Below are positions 2,998-38,584 of a stretch of 64,000 nt of DNA, piece after piece. The stretch's first letter is position 1. Each line of letters opens with the position of its first letter. Source of the stretch: Dendrobates tinctorius (taxonomy: Eukaryota); NCBI RefSeq assembly GCF_039654945.1, contig NW_027361779.1:16306001-16370000 (forward strand), in the 5' to 3' direction. Both the position numbers and the translations under genes were made by a program. A model generated the notes under the pieces. It was not told where the DNA came from. It ran no database searches and saw nothing but the letters and a program-made list of their open reading frames with translations.

Positions 2998-3809
2998 ATA
3001 CTATCATCATTATTATGTTCGCTCCAAGATTGGGGATAGTGCTTTGTGTATACTCTCAGTTGTGCTCTAGATTGTTGAGTTTTAGTTTAAAAAAAATAAA
3101 AATAAATTGGTATATCAGGTCACCAAATAATTGTTATTAATGACTTGAAAGAGAAAAGATTCCACAGTTTTCTAGGCTTATGTGAATGTCACTTTTTTGT
3201 TCATTTTTGCTGGCCAGACACATAAACCATAAATGGAGTATGCCAGCTCAAAATGACTATTCAAACCAAGCACAGGTGCTCTGTGCACACTCCCACCTGC
3301 TTGTTTTGCATCTAGTTTTGCCCTGCTCTTCGTTAATTGACTTTTCTGGCTTTGCGGGATCCGCAGAAGGATGTTGATGACACATAAAAGCTACGGTACG
3401 GTCCTGCTTATTTGAACGATGTATGACCCAATCTGGTTCCTTTTTGATCATTCTGATGAAGGCATTTTTCACTTTATTTTTTATCTTCCAGAAAGAAATA
3501 TTTGAAACCACTCAATTTATGCATCTTGGCATATTTGTTATTTTTATTTCTTTATTTTTAGAAGCCTCATTTATTTTTTGTCTATCTAGTATCATTATTA
3601 TTATTATTATTATTAAGATTATTATTTGCTATTTGTGCACCATGTTCTTCAAAATGGTGAGCATGGTTCATGAATTTTGCAAAGTAAAAAAATTATCTTT
3701 ATTTTGGTCTTTATTTATCCCTTTTTCACAAAATGGCGCAAATATTGTTCAAAATGTTCTATTGTACATAAAATCACCCGAGGGGGAATTAGAGTGCATT
3801 TGTGAGAAA

Positions 3810-4638
3810 AGTTGTGACTTTTCTGGATGATCCAGAGGAGGCATGGGAGAAGGTCATGTGGTCAGATGAGACCAAAATAGAACTTTTTGGTGTCAACTCC
3901 CCTTGACGTGTTTGGAGGAAGAAGAAGGATGAATGCAACACCAAGAACACCGTCCAAACCATGAAGCATGGTGGGGGAAACATCATACTTTGGAATGCTA
4001 AGGGGACAGAACAACTGCACCCTTTTGAAGGGAGGATGGATGGGGTCATGTATGCCGAGATTTTGGCCAACAACCTCCTTCCATCAGTAAGAGCATTGAA
4101 GATGGGTCATGGCTGTGTCTTCCAGCATGACAATGACCCAAAACACTTAGCCAGGGCAATTAAGGAGTGGCTCCATATGAAGCATTTCAAGGTCCTGGAG
4201 TGGCCTAACCAGTCTCCAGAACTTAACCCAAGAGAAAATCTTTCTAGGGAGCTGAAACTCCATGTTGCCCAGCGACTGACCCGTAATCTGAAAAATAAAG
4301 TGAAGATCTGTATGGAGGAGTGTGCCAAAATCCCTGCTGCAGTTTGTGCAAACTTGGGCAAAAACTACAGAGAACATCTGACCTCTATAATTGCAAACCA
4401 AGGTTTCTGTACCAAATATTAAATTCTGTTTTTCTATTGTATCAAATACTGATTTCATGCAATACAGTGCAAAATTATTGTGTAAAAATCATACAATGTG
4501 ATTTTCTGGATTTTTTTTAAGATTCTGTTTCTCACAGTTGAAGTGTACCTACCGTAAGTTAAAAATTATACTTCTCCATACTTTGTAAGTGGGAAAACTT
4601 GCAAATTCGGTAGAGTCAAATACTTATTTTCTCCACTG
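3810..4638 (+). mobile_element. Tc1 transposon, 3' half (same family as 12810-14326)
   Basis: [26 protein letters not shown]. Right TIR ends cactg-TA. Confidence 0.9.
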
Positions 4639-5400: not shown

Positions 5401-7349
5401 TCTTTGAATAACAAGTCGCTGCTTCCTCTATTTGAAATCTCTTCTTCAAACAAAGGATGCAGGTGGAGGTGTTGGGGAGTCACAGAGAGGGAGGAGAAGC
5501 CCCCAGTCCAGCCCCTGTGCACCGAAATCTAAATAGCAGAAAACTTCAAATGGTGATTAATGAAAAACAGAGTGGATTTCTTCACCTAAGGCATCATTGT
5601 AATCAGTATTAAAGCGCCATTACAGTTATTACTTTACTTTACATTGCAAAATTGTGCTGACTGGTTCTCTTTAAGTACCACTACAGTATCAATGATCTCA
5701 CTGTGTTGAACAATGTAATGGTATAATAGTTATACTAGCACTATCTACTTTGTAGTTAACTGAATTATATTTGGCATATTAAGGTTTAGCTATAGAAAGT
5801 TATATTATTCACCTTATTTCCCAATGCGCACTACATATAGCACCAACATGGGCTGTATAGCATTTACACACACACACTTCATCAGCAACCAGTTACAGTG
5901 GTTATCCGAGACTTGGTTTTTTTTTTCTAAGGGACTAAACACTTATCGGCACATAGTTGCTAACTTGCGAACTACCTGCTTGTTCTGCATTTCAGCATTG
6001 CTGACAGCTCCTGGCAGCGATTCTCCTAACTTCTGTGAAGTCATGTCGACAGAGCAGTTTCCTCTTGCACTTTCTTGTATTCTGTCAATGGGGTATCACT
6101 GCCAATGTCATGTTGGTTGACAGCCAACTCAGCCTAATTCAGTGGGGAGCCAGCTGTCAATCAACATAATATTGGCAGTGACGCCCCATCAACAGAGAAG
6201 ATCATAAGAGAAAGTACTGCTCTATGTATCAACATGATGTCACAGAAAGCAGGAGAATCATTGGCAGGAGTGGTTCATGACTGCTCTGACCTTGGGGAAA
6301 TCGGCACATGGCAGAACAGGTAGCAACTACCATATTGATAGGGTAAAGGACTTTTAGTAACCTATCAGTATGGTTTTGAAGTGTGTGAGGTGATAAGAAA
6401 ACGCCGCTCTGAAAATCCAGGACCCCAGGGATACATCAAATAAATAAACCTTGCTGTTTTTGCCTTTAAATAAGTACTCCACAAAACTTTATTGCCTAAA
6501 CCTGTATAAATGTACATGTAGTGCAGATGAAATGTTGTTATATACTCGCCGATTGCCATCTTCTCCTAATTTCCAGAACCACTCTTGTCCCCTTCAGGGT
6601 CAGGTGACAACTATTCTGACTTCCCGGATCACATTGGAGGCTATGTGTGAACTGCAAATCGTTTTAATGATATAACCCTATGGAGACTGGTTCTGGAGAT
6701 AAAATTTAGGTGGAAGTGCTTAATTTAGGTATAAAACGTAGAATAAGTCAACACACTACTCGAAGCACCATAATAATTATAGAGCCATTCTGGGGCATAT
6801 ACTGCATACAGAATATATAATAAGGAATTAATGGGTTAAGAAAGAAAATCTCTATCAGCTCAGTAAATGTAGAAAAGTAACTGTAAATCTGTAGATTCTC
6901 AGTATGGCGTAGACTAACGTCTTAGCAAAACATTATTGAAATTGCATGAAAAATATTTGAAAAATAAACAAGGAATGAATAGCTAAAAAACCCACAAACC
7001 TCAAAGGAATAGTCTATCCCCTTTCCATTTTCTCTCCCTCCTCCATCTCCGTCCTGTTTTCTAAAGTCTATTTTTGGAAAATCCATAAAAAATGTGCATG
7101 CTAAACTTCTATCTTGGTTTCCTGATATAAGAAAAATGAATCATCTCGAAGTTATGGAATAAGCAATCTGCAATTTTCTTGCAGACAAACAAAAAATCCT
7201 ACACTATTTGTGCACTGTGCTGTATGCAAGCTCGGATTAATTTCCTTGGTCCAAAGGGAGGCGAAACATAGCCTTCTGGTCAGTTGGGGCCAATATTTTG
7301 TCATGCTCAAAAGACTTGAATCAAAAAGTGAATTAGTCGTAAACCAGCT

Positions 7350-8750
7350 CAAAAACAAAAACTAATTCTAAAACTACAATTGCTTTATTGAAATATACTA
7401 AAACCATAGACATACATGAACACCACGCAAATTTGATTGCTGATCAAAGTTGTGACCCTAGTCACATACAAGAATAGGGTAGGGGAAATCACAGGCCAAT
7501 TTTACCCCTAGAAGGCCCTTTTCTTCCCCCTGCCTAACAGCGGAGGTTGGCACCCTCTTGAAGCGCAAATGGTGCCCCCGCTCCACGAAGGCTATCCCTA
7601 TTCACCCTATTAAGTGCTACTCTTCAGGGCAACAACATCAGGGTATAACAGTTAAAATGCACAAAGATATGGTCGCCAAACAGTCACAGTTTTTTACAGA
7701 TTCTTCCAACAGTCCTAGATCATCAAAGACCAATAAATACTAAAAGGCCCAGGGTGAGGGGTATACAACCAGTAACCGATAAGCAGATTTACTTACATTT
7801 ATGGGAAACTGAACTTGGAATTTTGCCTAAATTCCCTATTTACATCATTCCCTGCCTACCAGCGGAGCTTTTTCACCCTACTTTAAATTGGTGCCCCCGC
7901 ACCACGTCGACTATCCCTCACTGACCCTGTATATCCAAAACGATACCAATTAGATCACAGGGACAAGGAGACCAAATGCTAATGGACTGTTTGACAAATC
8001 AAATTCATATCATAATACCTGAAAAAGGGTCACAACAAAAATAGGGCTAGAAATGTCTCAATTCAAGAAGACATTCCTTTTTGTGCATAGGGGTTATTAA
8101 TCTTAATGGCACCAATAATAAGTACACATAGGGGTTGATAGTTGTAGAGGCACCAAAAATAAGAATAAATTCACCACCACTCCCCTATAATCTTAAAGGC
8201 ACCAATAATGAGTACACATAGGAGTTATTAGTTGTAGAGGCACCAAAAAGCACCAAAAATAAATTCACCATCACTCCCCTATAACCATACACACACTCAA
8301 TTGATGCTATTATTACCACACACGCTCATATTGCACACTGCCCAAAAACTACAGATCAGTCAATATATTCATCAGATACACTTAGCTTATTGCTGATTTC
8401 TATTTCATCTCGCCCCGCCTCGACACATTTCTCTCCCATCCAAGGAGTTCCTCAGGAGGCATATAGTAGTTTTAATGCTCATGCTGAGCATACGATATGG
8501 CACCTGGTTGCAATATTTTGTCATGTGAATGAAAAGACATTTCTCACTTACCTAACAGGAGACGTCATGCCACCCATCTGTTATACAGGCAGGCACAATG
8601 CGCCCAACACAAAGCCAGTCATGGCAGAAAAATATGGGCATGACGGGTCCAATTTTATCAATGGCACATAAACCCTGCCTAAAACATATTAGTTGCAAAA
8701 TTAAGCTGTGTCTTAACTTTATTCCATATATCTGCATTTCATTTGTTTTT
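7350..8750 (-). mobile_element. Penelope-like / retrozyme-like non-coding element
   Basis: Minimal hammerhead at 8417-8460, duplicated structured motif (7528-7600, 7850-7920), 90-bp tandem duplication at 8101-8284, minus-strand AATAAA near 7384. Boundaries approximate. Confidence 0.55.
8417..8460 (-). ncRNA. Minimal type I hammerhead ribozyme (CpG-decayed)
   Basis: Minus strand GCCTC CTGAGGA ACTCC TTGGATG GGAG A GAAA TGTG TC GAGGC: stem I, CUGANGA, stem II, GAAA, UC cleavage site. Confidence 0.75.
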
Positions 8751-9176
8751 TTCATTTGGGGGAGGGAAAAACTTTAAAAAAATGTAAAGATACTATCATG
8801 CAAACAGTAGTAAAGAATTTTGTTGTACTATTGTCCTGTTTGCATAGACAATGTATTTATAGAGATTTTCTGGTTTCGAAAAAACCCTTTACCAAGTAAA
8901 CAGTTTGCTTAAAACACAAAAAGACTAAATTGTTTTACTCATCTTCCTTAGGTCCAGCACTGATTCTTTATCGTTGCTCCCAGCATCTGTTAAGCGCTGC
9001 CGTCCTGATGTCATGTCGACAGACTGTAGCCAATCAGTTAGGTTGTGCCGTTAACTTGGGCAGAGCTGTTGGACTCAGGAGTAACAGTGAAGACTTTGTG
9101 CTAGACAAGGGTAGGTGAAAAAAAACAAACTGTAGCCAGAGTTAAGGAGTTTTCTGAAACCAGAAAACCACTTTCA

Positions 9177-9816
9177 ATGGAATCTGTGAGTAGGATCAAC
9201 CCTCCTAAGCCATCTACATGGGCATGCAGGTCGTAGGAAGCTGATTAAAATGATAACTTGATGTCTGCATTCCCATGTTTTAGAACAGAGAAATCCACTT
9301 TTTTCTTATACGTAAATGAGCTGCTCCAGGCGATTGACCGGACACAGTGAAACGAGGCGTTACCAGTGTGATATGTAATGGCTACTCTCTGCTCTTCTGA
9401 CCTCACTGCAGAGCTGTGTGTGGTTATACCCAACACATCTGCAGGTTCCTCTCAGTGGCCTCAGCTTCCATCTCACAGATAGACAGGGTTGCAATAATGT
9501 TACAACAGAGCAGAGCTGTGAGAGCTGAAGCTTCAAACATGTTTGCTATGAGACTAACTTCAGTTCTGCTGTATTGTTACATGTCTCAAACTGGTAAAGC
9601 CTACTTTTATTTAAAAGAAGCTCTGGAGGCAGATTCTCATGCAGATCAGTTTCCACCCATAGTCCTGAACAGCTCATTTACATATAAGAAAACATGGATT
9701 TCTCTGGAATTAGACATTGTATTGGAGATACCAAGGTATCATTTTATTCAGCTTCAAATGACCTACTTGCCTATATAGATGGCTTAGGAGGGTTGATCAT
9801 ATTAACAGATTCCCTT
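9177..9816. mobile_element. Kolobok/T2-like MITE
   Basis: Inverted ends ggaatctgt..gatcaaccctcctaagccatcta, TTAA on the right. Confidence 0.75.
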
Positions 9817-12809: not shown

Positions 12810-14326
12810 CAGTAAGGAAAATAAGTATTTGATGCACTGCCAATTTTACAAGTTTTCCCACCTACAAAGTGTGGAGAGGTCTGCAATTTTAGCGTAGGTA
12901 CACTTCAACTATGAGACAGAATCTTAAAAAAAAATCCAGAAAAATCACATTGTAAGATTTTTCCATAATTAATTTGAATGTCAATGCATGAAATAAGTGT
13001 TTGATAGAATAGAAAAACAGAACTTAATATTTGGTACAGAAACCTTTGTCTGTAAATAGAGGCCATATGTTTCCTGTAGTTCTTGACCAAGTTTGCACAC
13101 ACTGCAGCAGGGATTTTGGCCCACTCCTCCATACAGATCTTATCCAGGTCTTTCTGGTTTTGGGGCTGTCGCGGGGCAACATTTAGTTTCAGCTCCCTCC
13201 AAAGATTTTCTATTAGGTTCAGGTCTGGAGACTGGCTAGGCCTCTCCAGGACCTTGAAATGCTTCTTACGGAGCCACTCCTTACTTGCCCTGGCTGTGCG
13301 TTTCGGGTCTTTGTCATGTTGGAAGACCCAGACACGACCCATCTTCAATGCTCTTACTGACAGAAGGAGGTTGTTGGCCAAAATATCGCGATACATGATC
13401 CCATCCATCTTCCCTTCAATACAATGCAGTTGTCCTGCCCTCTTTGCAGAAAAGCACCCCCAGAATGTGATGTTTCCCCCACCATGCTTCACAGTTGGTG
13501 TTCTTGGTGTTGTACTCATCCTCCCTCTTCCTCCAAACACAGCAAGTAGAGTTGATATAAAAAAGTTCTACTTTGGTCTCATCTGAACATACTTCAAATG
13601 GGCCTGGGAATGTGCTTGTATGCCCTGCAGGATTTTGATGACTGCGTAGTGTGTTACTCACAGTAATGTTTGAGACTGCAGTACCAGCTCTCTTCAGTTC
13701 TTTGACCAGGTCCTCCCATGTAGTCCTGGGCCAATTCCTGACCTTTCTCAGAATCATCCTTGCTCCACGAGGTGAGTTCTTGCATGAAGCCCCAGACCAA
13801 GGAAGATTGACAGTCATCTTGTATTTCTTCCATTTTCTAATAATTGTGCCAACAGTTGTTGCCTTCTCACCAAGTTGCTTGCCTATTGTCCTGCAGCGCT
13901 TCCCAGCCTTTTGTAGGTCTGCAATTTTGCTACTGGTGTCCTTACACAGCTCTTTGGTCTTGACCATGTGGAGAGGTTGGAGTCTGATTGAGTGTGTGGA
14001 CAGGTGTCTTTTATATAGGTAACAAGTTCAAACAGTTACAATTAATACAGGTAATGAGTGCAGAGTAGGAGGGCTTCTTAAAGGAAAACTAACAGGTCTG
14101 TGAGAGCCAGAATTTTTGCTGGTTGGTAGGTGATCAAATACTTAGTTCATGCAATAAAATGAAATTTAATTATTTTAAAATTAAACAATATGATTTTCTA
14201 TTTTTTTATTTTTTGAGTGTCTCTCACAGTTGAAGTGTACCTACAATAAAAATTACAGACCTGTCCATTCTTTGTAGGTGGGAAAAATCATCAGTGTATT
14301 GAATACGGTACTTATTTTCCCCATTG
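12810..14326 (-). mobile_element. Tc1/mariner transposon with long (~230 bp) TIRs, degenerate transposase
   Basis: MVKTKEL.. HTH in ORF 13416-13967 and DD34E catalytic region ([24 protein letters not shown]) in ORF 12905-13540. TIR cagt..aaaataagtatt at both ends, TA on the right. Confidence 0.92.
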
Positions 14327-24114: not shown

Positions 24115-26589
24115 TTAAGTGCAAAAGACCTTCAGAAATATTTAGCAGATTCTGGAGTTGTGGGACATTATCCTACTGTTCAGAGACACCTACACAAATA
24201 TGACCTTCATGGTAGTCATGAGAAGAAAACCTCTCCTGCATCCTCACCTTAAAATTCGCCATCAGAATTCTGCAAAACTACATCAAAACAAGACCGATGA
24301 GGTTAAAATAGAACTCTATGGCCACAAAGATCGACGGCATGTGTGGAGAAAAAAGGCCACAGAATTTCTGAAAAAGAACATCATGCCAACTATTAAGCAT
24401 GGGGGTGGATCAATCATGGTTTGGGGTTGTGTTGCAGTTAATGGCACAGGGAACATTTCATGGGGGAAAGAATGGATTCAATGAAATTTCGATAAATTCT
24501 TGATGCAGACATAACACCATCTGTAAAAATCTGAAGTTGAAATGAGGATGGAAATGGATAATGATCCTAAACACATGTGAAAATCCACAATAGACTACCT
24601 CAAAAGGGGCAAGGTGAAGGTTTTACACTATCCCTCACAGTCTCCTGATCTGAACATCATCGAAAATCTGTGACTAGACCTCAAAATAGCAGTGCATGCA
24701 AGACACACAGGAATCTTATAGAACAGGAAGAATTTGCCAAGGAAGAATGGATGAAAATCCCTCAGAACAAGAATTGAAAGACTCTTGTTTGGTTACAAAA
24801 AGCATTTACAAGCTGAGACACTTTCAAATGGGGGTTCTACAAAGTACTAACCACACAAGGTGCTTAATATCTTGCATCAGCTCATTTTCGTTTTTGTAAT
24901 TTTTAAAATGTTAAAGATAAAAAAACATAAAAATTTATATATAGGCTTTTTAGAGATCATTCAATCTTCAACTTGCTTTACTGTGTTCACCATAACAGTA
25001 ATTTTTACCAATTTTTGCCCAAACTTTTATAGGCTACTGCAGTGTTGGACTGGGGTGCCAAGGGCCCGCCAGTAACATTGACTATGGAGGCCTGCTTTTC
25101 ACCTGCATACAAACATTACATACCCTCATTACCTATATCCCTATATAATAATAAACTGGGTAGTTTGTTTAATTAATGATGAGATGCTGTTTTTTTCTGT
25201 ACAGAGTGAATCAAGTGAATTAAGCCAAGTACTGCCCATACAATGGGGTTGTTGGCCCAGATCTGCACAGGGGGATTCCCCTGCTCCCCTATGGGACAGT
25301 CTGAGCCTGTGCCACTGTACACGTGCTCACCGTGCTCACTAGGCAATTCTGTGGACCACTTCATTATCCACGTAGGTTCAGAGTGTTTTAGGTTTAATTT
25401 CATTTTAATTTCTCGTGACTTTTAATAAATAGTTTTTAAAGTTTTCCTGACACATTTATATAAATCAGGGACCTATGGAACACATAGATCTATATGAACT
25501 AGCTGCTGGGAAACATTTCATGGCCTTTAAGGGTACTTTCCATTATGCAAGGTCACCAACCGCTACTTTAAATGTCCCACTGGGGATATGCACCAAGGAG
25601 AGAAGACAGATTCTGTATATAAGCAGATGAATGAGATCATAAGCCACCTCTTCCAAGCAGATATTAGGCCTTTGCATAATGTTTTTCACATTCAGGTCCA
25701 CTTAATCTGCTTCCATCAGGAAATTTACAGTTTAATATAATAATAAATAATAATACATTTTATTTATATAGCGCCAACATATTCCACAGCACTTTAAACA
25801 ACAGTAGGCAATACTGTATCGGATGAATACGTTAATGCCATTGTCCCTAATACAGCTCTTTTAAGAGAATTTTGTCAATATATTTCTACATTTCATTAAT
25901 GTGTATTAAATATTATTACGAAATAAAATATTACTAATGCTTGTATTTCAATATATTTCTAAATTTATGATAATCAAAACTAGAAAACTAATTTTTACCT
26001 CTACATAGTCCCTCTACAAAGTAATAACTCTATTCCCATCATTTGTATCTTCTCCAAGTTGTATACAGCACGTACGTGAGAGTAAATGAACGAGCCATCT
26101 GATACTCGCTACTGTTATTTCGCTCATTGTCTCCTAATATACCTAAATCCTTTCTCATATCAGCTTTCTCCACTTGCCTCCCTGTTAGTGTTACTGCTGT
26201 CACTAGTGAAGTGCAAAATCCCATGTAAGTTTACATCTGCGATAAGGGTCACCTTGATGCTCTTGTCCACTTTTTTGATTTTACTATATCCATTTGCAGC
26301 TGGATTTATGTTCCCTTTCTCCTTCATTTGTCATATGGGGGAACTGAACACAAGTGTATTTGCAAAACCAGACTAGAAATTCTGAGTGAAAATTGTGTTT
26401 TGCCAGGGGTCACAAATTATTTTGGTGGATATGATTTACCCCCACAAAATTAATGTTAAAACAAAATGTCCTCCAAAGAAGTAGGTTTTCTTAAAGGTAG
26501 TCCGAACCTAAGAGAAAAACAAAATGAAAAAAATACCTGGCAATAAGTAAATACAAAAATAAATAGTAATAATGCATGTAAATAACATA

Positions 26590-26668
26590 GGGTACTTGGC
26601 TGGCTCTATCTTGATCAAAAGAGCATAAAAGCCATCCTGCCGCAACAAGATGTACCCAATTGGGATGA
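26590..26668 (-). ncRNA. HDV/CPEB3-like ribozyme fold, copy 1 (decayed)
   Basis: TCATCCC AATT GGGTAC ATC TTGTTGC GGC AGGATGG CT [P4 GCTCT..AGAGC] G CCAA GTACCC. Confidence 0.55.
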
Positions 26669-27007
26669 TCCTTAACTCTTGCAGTTCACCATACTATGTG
26701 ACACTTGACCGGATAATAGATGGGGTAGAGTCGGACTCAAAGTTGACTGTTTTGCACCTGCCTGGGAAAGCTATATAGACAAGATGCATAGCCCCAAAAG
26801 GGGGAGTCACGCCCCTGTATGTACAAATTACATAGAACTAAAGCAAAACCAAAGAAAAGTGCCAGAATAGATGTTGGTATAAGTGCAATGCGTAGGTGCA
26901 CATGCACACTGTGGCCATTTAATAGACAGCATCTACGATAAAAAAAAATTGCATATACCCTGAAGTAAGTAAATATATAAGCAGTAATAGTACATGTAAA
27001 TAACACA

Positions 27008-27086
27008 GGGCACTTAGCTTACATTATTTTGATCAAAAGAGCATGAAAGCAACGCTACTGCGACAAGGTGCACCCAATCAGGATAG
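27008..27086 (-). ncRNA. HDV/CPEB3-like ribozyme fold, copy 2 (decayed)
   Basis: CTATCCT GATT GGGTGC ACC TTGTCGC AGT AGCGTTG CT [P4] G CTAA GTGCCC, 418 bp from copy 1. Confidence 0.5.
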
Positions 27087-27175
27087 ACCCTAACCCTCAA
27101 AATAGATGGGGGCAGAGCAGGACCCAAACCACACTGTTTTGCACCTGCTTGTGGAAATCTATATAGACAGGATTC

Positions 27176-28000
27176 TGTTACCACCGCTGGTCGGGTGAGG
27201 GTAATCTCCAGGAGTGGACCCTCTGGATCGTGGCTCCGAGGGGCCCTGGGCGAGCGGCCAGGTGGAGCCGACCCCTAAGCAGGGATCGTTAGGAGCAGGC
27301 CCAGGGGTTCGGATACCATGATAGCTGGTACCTAGAGGGGCGGCTCAGAATGGACTGGAGTAGGAGTACGAGACTGTAGGCAATAGGACCAGAGTGGGGT
27401 TGCGGGACTGGAATATAGATAGCAGGACTGAGCAGGATAACTGGAGACAGGACCGGAGTTGGACTGCGGGACTGGAGCCTAGACAGCAGGACGGAGCAGG
27501 AACATGGGAGGCATGACCGGAGAAGGACTGCAGGGCTGGAGCTTAGATAGCAGGATGGAGCAGGAATACGGGAGGCAGGACTGGAGTAGGACTGCAGGGC
27601 TGGAGCATAGGTAGCAGGACTAAACAGGAACATGGGAGTACAGGACTGTGAGACTGCGGCAGGAACCACAGAGTACGGGACTGAGATACTGCGGCAGGAA
27701 CACGAGAAAGCAGGACCTAGTGTGCTAGCAAACACATCGATCAGGCACCTCCCTCAAAGGAGGACAGCCTGATATGCCCCTGTGTGAACTGTCATTGGTC
27801 CGGTGGTGCTTCCGGGTCACGGCATTGCCGGAGCATAAGTGACAGTAGGGAGGAGCGGCCGCGGCCTATGGCGCATGTGCATTGCATGCAGAGACGCCGT
27901 CGGCCGCGGACCTGTCAGAAGGGACCACCTTGGATGTCGGACGGCAGAGGGCTGCGGCGCGGGAGCGGAGGCTGGGTGAATATACAATGGCTGCGTGACA
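27176..28000 (-). mobile_element. Solo LTR (Gypsy-like, 825 bp)
   Basis: TGTTAC...GTGACA inverted termini, flanks gattc/cattc, GC-rich with internal gcaggactggag repeats. The host repeat resumes across it. Confidence 0.82.
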
Positions 28001-31000
28001 CATTCACAGCGTAAAAAGGGGAAGTCACGTCCCTTTATGAACAAAGTACAAAAAACTAAATCAAAATCAAAGAAATGAGCTGGAACAATTCCAGTCTAGG
28101 ACTTGAGTGAAAATGTTGTTTTGCCTGGGGTCAGATATTCTTTTGGTGGATCTGATTACATAGCTCCTACAATATAAGCATTAAAACAAAATTACCAACA
28201 AAGAACTAGATGTTCTTAAAGGTATTCTGTCAGCACAAAATGACCGTTCAAACTGTTCATGGAGAGCAATGCCCAGAAATATTTTTTTCCACATGTAATT
28301 TTATTTCATAAATTTAATCAGTCACCTTTTTACAAATAGAACAATCTAATTTTATTATTATTATAATTTTATTTTATAATTTTATTTTTTTACAAATAAA
28401 ACAATTTAACATACTAACGACCAGGCCATTTATCCCCCATGCTTAGCCAGGCGCTTTTTTTTTCCATACATGCAATTTAAAGAGCTGTACATTTTTTTTT
28501 CTCATGTGGATATTGAATTTTTTAATCCTTTCTTTGTGATACCTTGACATACATTTTATATCTTTCCTTTTGGGCTACATTGTTCTGTCATTGTCAAACT
28601 TGCTTTCCTTTTTTTTTTTTTTGCAGCTATCCTTGTTAAAGTAAAGGAAATGCATATCTATTGTTCACATTTTTTTCAGACCACAAATGGCCACTAAAAT
28701 ACATTTAAAAATTTGTTGCTCATACTGTAACTATTATTTTTATACAGTATATTGGACATTTTTTTCTGATAGGGATGGGGCTAGTAAAGGTAATTTGCTT
28801 TGGCAGTCTTTATTATATTTTTTTCTACCGGCTTTTTATTTATTTACTTTTTGATTTGTTTCATATATAGCTCCCCCCATAAGGTAAAAAAAAAAAAAAA
28901 AAAAAAGACTTTTGAGGGGAATTTCATAATTTAATTTTTTTTTACCCAATTTACCCTGCAACTTGGGCTGGTATGTATATTGGCCCTAGTTAAAGTGGAA
29001 TTGCAGCCTCCTGGTTGCTTAGAAGAGCAGATTGTGACTCCTAGAAGTCAGCAGCTTGTTTATATATTCTCTAGACCCAGTAATCACATAACCGCTGTGC
29101 CCAGACTACGAAACGGTGATCGAAGGCAGAAATGGCAACAAACCATCCCTGCCTTCTATCTAGGCAGGCGGTGTCTGACAGCTGGATCCCTGCTCCCACA
29201 GCTGCATGTGCAGCTTTTCTACTATGCAGTGACGTTTTAGAACATCACTACAGAGTAGCACACAGACAGCCTAGATGTTATTTTTTTTTTACCTATGGGC
29301 GGTTCAGAAGTAGCTGAAGAGCAGCTGTCACTAGAGCAAAAGAAGTCACATTTTTATTTTTATTATATTCCTGCTGCTCTCCTAAATATTCATTTTTTTT
29401 AAAAAAATCTCCATGCATAGATATGGGTCTTTTTATTTGGTGCTAATTTTCTTGTGTTGTACCAAAGGGGCGTTACTCGCAGGATTCTCTTGGTATGTGT
29501 TTTTAGACGGCTCTGCATTATTACCCTATGAGTCACGCCCTCTTGTTAAAGACCATAAAAAGTAGCACTTTATAAAAAGGTCTACATCTCTGGAATCATA
29601 TGGTGGATTAAAAAAATACTCATGGTGGCAGCAGGAATAAAGTCAAAACTCACCACTTAACCACTTTTGACCTGTTCTCTTTGCTCAACGCATCATTTCC
29701 CAAGAATAGCAGTCCTTATTTTTTTCCTTGTGTGTCTCCTTCCATTAGATGGTCAGGTGTATGGGTTGGCTTTGAGTGACATGTTGAGTGTATTAGCAAA
29801 TGCATAAACAAGTACACTGAAACTATATAACCTCGACTTGTTTATTAGAGATAAACATTCTTAAATGAGTCCACTTGCATTTTACAGGCTGCTAGGTCAC
29901 TCTCCGTGGATGGGAAACTGTGACCTCGCTTCAACACCTGTCGCAGTATATAAAGAGGATTGAAGGAGCAGAGTGTAATCCTTGTTACCATGTTCACAGG
30001 GAGGTCTATAAACAAGGAGGCAGCCTATCTAGCGAGTGTCTGCTCCCTGAAGAAACGGATCCTCAGAAGTCCAGCCATACAATATATCATCTTCAAGCAC
30101 TAATATGAGCCTCCTTATTTCCCATCAATGCTTTCAAGATAAATAAAGATCAGTAAAGAAAGACACAATTAGTTCATGAACACTGAAGAATTTGTAAGGC
30201 CAATGAAGGGTGGAAGGACTCAAAAGCCACAGCGAAAAATAATCAGCACAAGCATTTTAGGAAGCTAATTTTATTAATGAAAATATTAGCATTTCTATAT
30301 TCACTTTTTTGGTATATATACACCTTCCATATAGCATTTGGACCAAAAGAACATTTCTATTACGATCTGCAACTGTACAACAATTAACGTTTGGCTTAGA
30401 AACTATAGAGCGGGGGTGCAAAACTTTTTCTGTCCAAAGGGTCACATTGTCAGACTGAACAAATGCCAAGAGCTGAAAAAAAATAAACTAAAGCGGTGTT
30501 ACGATCTGAGACATTTATAAAATATAGTAATGAAATGCCATAAATGTCAGATATATGCAAGTTACAGTCCCAGGACTCCCACCTATCCTGTTCGCATTCG
30601 AGAAGGGAAGAGACGTGCAAGCTGCACCTTCTACTGTACTTCATGTGAGTTGCTAAAATAAGTTTCACTCCTCCCATAAACCTACCTTGAAGAGAGCCCC
30701 ATTGAGGTATGGCTACCTCTCTATGTCATCTTCTCCTTTCTGGAGTGCTACAAATTTGATATTTGAGGATTCCAGAGAGGGATTCAGCGTGCTTATCCTT
30801 CCTTGCTCTGCACTACCCCACACATCTACCTTCTTGCAAGGAATATACATGTAAGGAGCCAGACACAGAAAAGCATATCTATGTGGCCAACGGGGTGCAG
30901 GGTGTGCATCCCTGCTGTAGAGCTACAAAATTGGTATTTTTCCATTACCTGTAAATAATTTGATAAAATACTAACCTGGGTGTGATACGTTGATGGAAAT

Positions 31001-38456: not shown

Positions 38457-38584
38457 NNNNNNNNNNNNNNNNNNNNNNNNNNNNNNNNNNNNNNNNNNNN
38501 NNNNNNNNNNNNNNNNNNNNNNNNNNNNNNNNNNNNNNNNNNNNNNNNNNNNNNNNNNNNNNNNNNNNNNNNNNNNNNNNNNNN
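38457..38584. other. Assembly gap (128 N)
   Basis: Run of N. Confidence 1.

Follow-up and report, generated by a model that had tools for sequence, protein, structure and literature searches.

The 64,000 nucleotides considered here (the window) come from Dendrobates tinctorius (assembly GCF_039654945.1, contig NW_027361779.1, positions 16,306,001 to 16,370,000 of the forward strand), and on their minus strand they hold the decayed remains of an old insertion, in which a non-coding frog repeat of an abundant kind stands in about 1.9 tandem units. Every tandem unit carries a single 79-nt motif, and the conserved block that this motif forms quite plausibly, if short of probably, descends from a variant of the self-cleaving ribozyme of hepatitis delta virus (HDV) type, judging from its letters and the pairs they allow. 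The array itself is a decayed retroelement array, with units of 390-420 bp that share 67-76% identity.

The repeat array and its family

Read along the minus strand, the array begins with a flanking module A (28227-28091), seen as a self-match and standing as direct-repeat partner to a module A' at the far end, and continues with module B (28085-28002), a leading partial unit recognised by local alignment to its counterpart B'. Between B and module C lies a foreign insertion of 821 bp (27996-27176, with no strand assigned), which splits the two. Module C (27175-26933), delimited by self-match and alignment, is the body of unit 1 and carries motif copy 2; it is followed by a 65-nt spacer (26932-26868) that separates it from B', is multi-copy in sequencing reads and is without counterpart in the other unit. 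Module B' (26867-26784, by local alignment to 28002-28085) is the upstream part of unit 2 and is contiguous with module C' (26785-26508), the body of that unit, which carries motif copy 1 and, by BLAST of the window against itself, matches 26933-27173 with 67% identity. The second flank, A' (26502-26368), is 78% identical to A (28091-28227) and is single-copy at 80% likeness. Identity between C and C' is 67% overall and 76% across a 135-nt block around the motif. The tandem repeat described in an earlier note on this DNA is real, with one motif to each unit, but it is untidy, with only the 1.9 or so diverged units and with the foreign 821 bp falling inside the span that note had claimed.

The repeat unit is non-coding, as had been proposed, in that its open reading frames (ORFs) are short only and have no Pfam match; two protein searches with these spurious ORFs gave no candidate further copies. 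No Penelope-like element occurs within the 64-kb window, the sole reverse transcriptase of which is that of a long interspersed nuclear element (LINE) of the apurinic endonuclease (APE) type at 52-57.5 kb.

That the repeat is a multi-copy family, a further claim of the earlier note, is plain from the contigs of four public sequencing runs, which were aligned to 26300-28300 at 80% likeness and which represent this species and a close relative (run X5). Depth is about 6, the single-copy level, at the flanks (26300-26500 and 28109-28175), and reaches about 3600-4100 over the 3' block of the motif together with some 35 nt downstream of it, the other parts of the unit standing at 50-1700, or 4-70 times less. 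The motif blocks are covered by 70-120 distinct contigs per run in the two species, and no part of the unit is shared more widely than the motif block. The orthologous locus is present in the second species (run X5) at 96-98% identity, and so the array predates the split of the two species.

The insertion (27176-27996) is GC-rich, unrelated to the array, and contains a minisatellite of four 64-bp repeats (27385-27646). It is bordered on both sides by a duplicated stretch of about 9-10 bp (27166-27175 and 27997-28005). It entered the array later, since B' and C' adjoin each other with no such insertion and one X5 contig lacks it. Its own family is very abundant, with a summed contig depth of 1e4-1e5 in the two species, and is covered also by a run guessed to be RNA; neither terminal inverted repeats nor a transfer RNA-like head (ARAGORN) were found in the insertion, nor any Pfam match for its 148-aa ORF. 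Just upstream of module A, a segment at 28216-28253 is highly repeated, is covered by runs X6 and X12 and shows loose ends to either side, so that it may be a small repeat in its own right or the end of a conserved element.

The conserved motif and its HDV-like parse

Motif copy 1 runs from 26668 to 26590 and copy 2 from 27086 to 27008, both on the minus strand and 418 bp apart, with predicted cuts 5' of 26668 and 5' of 27086 respectively; the letters and coordinates given for them in the earlier note are correct. The two are identical at 59 of 79 positions. Both can be read, as that note had it, in the order and lengths of the HDV elements, that is of its paired (P), joining (J) and loop (L) segments: P1(7) J1/2(4) P2(6) P3(3) L3(7) P3'(3) P1'(7) J1/4(CU) P4(29) J4/2(GCYAA) P2'(6). 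Copy 1 forms 6/7 pairs of P1, 6/6 of P2 and 2/3 of P3; copy 2 forms 5/7, 6/6 (including two wobbles) and 2/3. The 5-bp hairpin of P4 is formed by copy 1 alone, P4 of copy 2 being weak. A composite of both copies does pair fully, again as stated earlier. Given the unpaired P1 and P3 positions in both copies and the poor P4 in copy 2, the two local copies are probably inactive and should not cleave, and the view that they are dead seems well founded.

Some of the letters that matter in HDV are kept. L3 reads UUGUUGC and UUGUCGC in the two copies, and U21 and G26, which by their letters would correspond to the L3 U20.G25 reverse wobble (a metal site in HDV), are present in both. J4/2 reads GCCAA and GCUAA, directly 5' of P2' in each case, and the cytosine followed by N-A-A, with a catalytic role predicted from the letters, is thereby found in both copies. 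In HDV-like ribozymes the purines after this cytosine dock on P3, and cleavage, which depends on Mg2+, falls 5' of P1 and leaves a 5'-OH and a 2',3'-cyclic phosphate. At the predicted cut site copy 1 pairs U1.G37 and copy 2 pairs C1-G37, neither of which is the G1.U37 wobble of HDV type. A G23:C38 pair of P1.1 is possible in both copies, in the orientation opposite to that of HDV; it is invariant and hence uninformative.

In the two-copy alignment the HDV structure has 85.3% of its helix cells paired; sliding the partners lowers this to 27-50%. Ten helix pairs differ between the copies, five of which are still paired through one-sided changes and five of which are unpaired in one copy, roughly the outcome to be expected had a paired ancestor decayed neutrally.

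The family adds to this at the lesions of copy 1. At 26639 and 26638, among the 40 difference rows listed out of 291 (the family letter at column 7 falling outside those listed), the plus-strand letters are A and C in 80-92% of the depth summed over the other family contigs of the two species; on the minus strand this makes U30 and G31, where copy 1 has C30 and A31. These majority letters pair exactly both copy 1 lesions in the HDV fold, as A18:U30 in P3 and C7:G31 in P1, and one prediction of the ribozyme reading is borne out here. Two random changes that mend both lesions would have a probability which we put at the order of 1e-4, with the caveats that U30 was already implied by copy 2 and that both letters still pair in the hairpin of the nested fold discussed below, where two Watson-Crick pairs become wobbles and four consecutive G.U pairs result. 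CpG decay was considered as the source of the dinucleotide at 30/31 (UG in the majority, CA in copy 1, UA in copy 2) and was rejected by inference, because CG decaying symmetrically should yield as much CA as UG, but UG makes up 80-90%. The J4/2 cytosine is also kept in the consensus of 119 contigs that diverge in P4 (with a loose end at 26597).

Further copies near by are few. A third and very decayed homologue of the motif lies outside the array on the minus strand (18679-18600; nhmmer E = 0.21, with alignment and parse), forms 3/7 pairs of P1 and has mostly lost its helices. Apart from this homologue near 18.6 kb no other good copies of the unit were found within the window by BLAST, approximate patterns or nhmmer, and a core look-alike at 62.0 kb was discarded, as it does not complete the HDV fold. 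Directly 5' of the predicted cut of copy 2 stands a telomere-like stretch, GAGGGTTAGGGT, at 27087-27098 (minus strand), with a degenerate counterpart at copy 1, AAGAGTTAAGGA, at 26669-26680; a cut of the RNA at copy 2 would leave the preceding unit with the stretch at 27087-27098 as its 3' end.

Rival readings of the block

Several observations, set out in this paragraph and the next, weigh against descent from a ribozyme. With a generic HDV descriptor relaxed to the quality of copies 1 and 2, the window gives 14 matches against 18.7 +/- 3.7 in dinucleotide shuffles. A descriptor taken from the literature (L3 beginning with U and having G as its sixth letter, P1.1 with a Watson-Crick pair of any kind and orientation, J4/2 as NCNAA and P2 at 6/6) is expected by chance, in shuffled sequence, 1.25 times per 64-kb window at the quality of copy 2 and 0.38 times at that of copy 1, and it also matches two unrelated sites, at about 44.96 kb (plus strand) and about 16.3 kb (minus strand). 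Since the descriptors match at chance frequency, the topology of the fold alone is no evidence. Rfam 15 finds no ribozyme family of any class on the whole window at the gathering score, nor in 26000-28600 at E<=10, where no hammerhead model matches either. Between copies 1 and 2 the HDV fold has zero two-sided (compensatory) changes, a count taken from two copies only, and the best-conserved part between them is P4, which is unusual for HDV-like ribozymes. Contig depth over the motif's 5' half, which spans P1 to L3, is lower than over its 3' half by a factor of about 8, and run X12, guessed to be RNA, covers the motif so thinly and ambiguously that it proves nothing.

A simpler fold also competes for the same letters. 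The minimum free energy (MFE) structure of copy 1 is a nested three-way junction (-23.4 kcal/mol, z = -1.84) made of a helix 12-17/74-79, by which P2 is kept, a hairpin 18-24/29-35, and a helix 36-39/68-71 closing 45-49/62-66. Over both copies this fold has 90.9% of its cells paired, slightly above the HDV fold, and the only compensatory change between the copies, U-A to C-G at 19:34, belongs to it. Its hairpin moreover outlasts P1 in copies 1, 2 and 3 (7/7, 6/7 and 5/7 against 6/7, 5/7 and 3/7), the third being the decayed homologue near 18.6 kb.

It is a tenable possibility, the less so for the points that follow, that the block is a structured and non-catalytic RNA or DNA element, such as a reverse transcriptase recognition site or a promoter, with the nested junction as its form and the HDV drawing a coincidence of register. 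The majority letters U30 and G31 leave the nested hairpin paired, but its run of G.U pairs would then make it weak. Copy 2, for its part, folds no better than shuffles (z = +0.5), and the nested fold pairs the conserved J4/2 cytosine and leaves positions 1-7 unexplained. Pseudoknots are outside the reach of MFE programs, and a nested alternative of this kind is to be expected even for true HDV-like ribozymes.

It is unlikely that the block has no RNA function at all and is just the slowest-decaying or youngest part of the repeat, with both folds chance drawings on related sequences, for although chance matches to the HDV descriptor are common, half of the helix substitutions break pairs as in neutral decay, the thermodynamic z-scores are weak and short cores recur easily (some 100 chance matches of the 18-nt core in metagenomes), none of those core matches completes the fold, the 85-91% of cells paired contrasts with the 27-50% of the sliding controls, both copy 1 lesions are paired by the majority letters, and the block is far more widely shared than the rest of the unit. 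The core matches in question, 97 loci from contigs of metagenomes and 5 from viral ones, were set aside as chance; the 23-nt 3' block has no match in viral or prokaryotic genome contigs.

As the HDV fold is no better than chance here and a simpler fold fits equally, the motif is at most a dead ribozyme relic at this locus. Were the block indeed derived from an HDV-like ribozyme, this would be a variant whose cut site has pyrimidine-1 paired to G37 and whose P1.1 has its G:C38 pair reversed, in which the U...G of L3 and the J4/2 cytosine followed by N-A-A are kept. In source copies the ribozyme would act on a transcript that is multimeric or reads through, cutting it immediately 5' of P1 and so giving each unit-length RNA a defined 5'-hydroxyl end, and a reverse transcriptase supplied in trans might then copy the unit-length RNA. 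The wider proposal is that frogs carry very abundant retrozyme-like non-coding tandem retroelements which use a variant HDV-like ribozyme to cut units of about 400 nt, possibly circular, and that the present locus is a dead copy of one of them; this we regard as somewhat doubtful.

If intact copies do cleave, HDV-type ribozymes would join the hammerheads as a processing module of animal retrozyme-like repeats, and descriptors that require G1 and an L3-C:J1/4-G pair in P1.1 would be failing to detect a large set of such ribozymes in vertebrates. Such a result would also matter for the question of how frequently the HDV fold is taken up by mobile elements that are unrelated. The locus alone, with its two worn copies, adds little, and its main value is as a caution on fold evidence drawn from a single locus, where the HDV fold is not above chance and where a competing nested fold needs to be excluded at the level of the family.

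Elsewhere in the window, the LINE that holds the reverse transcriptase belongs to the non-long terminal repeat (non-LTR) retrotransposons and lies at 52311-57257 (minus strand), with Exo_endo_phos, RVT_1 and zf-RVT domains; as these are spread over several ORFs the element is probably broken. A remnant of a Tc1/mariner-type DDE transposase (DDE_3) lies at 12905-13540 (minus strand). At about 61140-61960 variants of CCCTAA make up a degenerate array of telomere-like kind, in which the GC skew is 0.83 and the ORFs have spurious hexapeptide-repeat Pfam matches, and a run of 128 N at 38457-38584 marks an assembly gap or masked sequence. For 8417-8460 and 7525-7925, where a minimal hammerhead had been suggested, Rfam gives no hammerhead or other ribozyme in 7000-9200 at E<=10.

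Comparison with known ribozymes and retroelements

In form the motif resembles the CPEB3 and HDV ribozymes (RF00622, RF00094). As in the parse of the motif, the order in these is P1, P2, P3, L3, P1.1, P4 and J4/2, P1 has 7 bp and P3 has 3 bp, the 7 nt of L3 begin with U and have G in sixth place, and the cytosine of J4/2 precedes N-A-A. P1.1 consists of two G:C pairs in HDV and of one G-C pair plus U-U in CPEB3, and it is the CPEB3 arrangement that the putative P1.1 of the motif resembles (PMC4836649). The motif departs from both in the first pair of P1, which is pyrimidine:G instead of the G.U wobble that serves as a metal site at the cut in HDV and CPEB3 (PMC4836649), in the reversed G:C of P1.1, and in matching no Rfam model. 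It also sits in a repeat, whereas the CPEB3 and HDV ribozymes sit in an intron or a viral genome.

The swapped features of P1 and P1.1 to which the earlier note drew attention are not without precedent. Two fast-cleaving members of the HDV family have a P1.1 of U:A plus C:U or of U:A plus U:U (PMC13635239); P1.1 being variable among such members, a reversed G:C pair is a small departure. Precedents are found also in the L1Tc/ingi group (PMC4035085). The ribozymes of L1Tc, NARTc and SIDER in trypanosomatids (L1TcRz) are carried, like the motif, by mobile non-LTR elements, some of them non-autonomous, have a P1 G-C orientation that differs from HDV and R2 and a P1.1 of differing composition, and were missed by the standard descriptor yet are active in vitro (PMC3185411, PMC4035085). 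Unlike the motif, L1TcRz stands at the 5' end of dispersed elements, doubles as a promoter and has a single pair in P1.1.

As an element, the array is close to the animal non-LTR retrozymes, which are likewise non-coding, abundant in amphibians and organised as tandem units of a few hundred bp, with one ribozyme in each unit where the array has one candidate (PMC7229834; bioRxiv 10.64898/2026.07.22.740005). In those described so far, among them retrozymes from Xenopus and axolotl, the ribozyme is a hammerhead (PMC7229834; bioRxiv 10.64898/2026.07.22.740005), and no description of an HDV-type retrozyme was found in the literature searched. The hammerheads of the animal non-LTR retrozymes are of type I, and these elements are related to Penelope-like pseudo-long terminal repeats (pLTRs), whereas the candidate in the array is of HDV type and is accompanied by no hammerhead. 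The HDV-like ribozymes of R2 and RTE-type elements would share with the motif its proposed role, that of cutting the RNA of the element out of a longer transcript (PMC3774820). These elements differ from the array in being autonomous and coding, and their ribozymes have the standard core and stand at the 5' ends.

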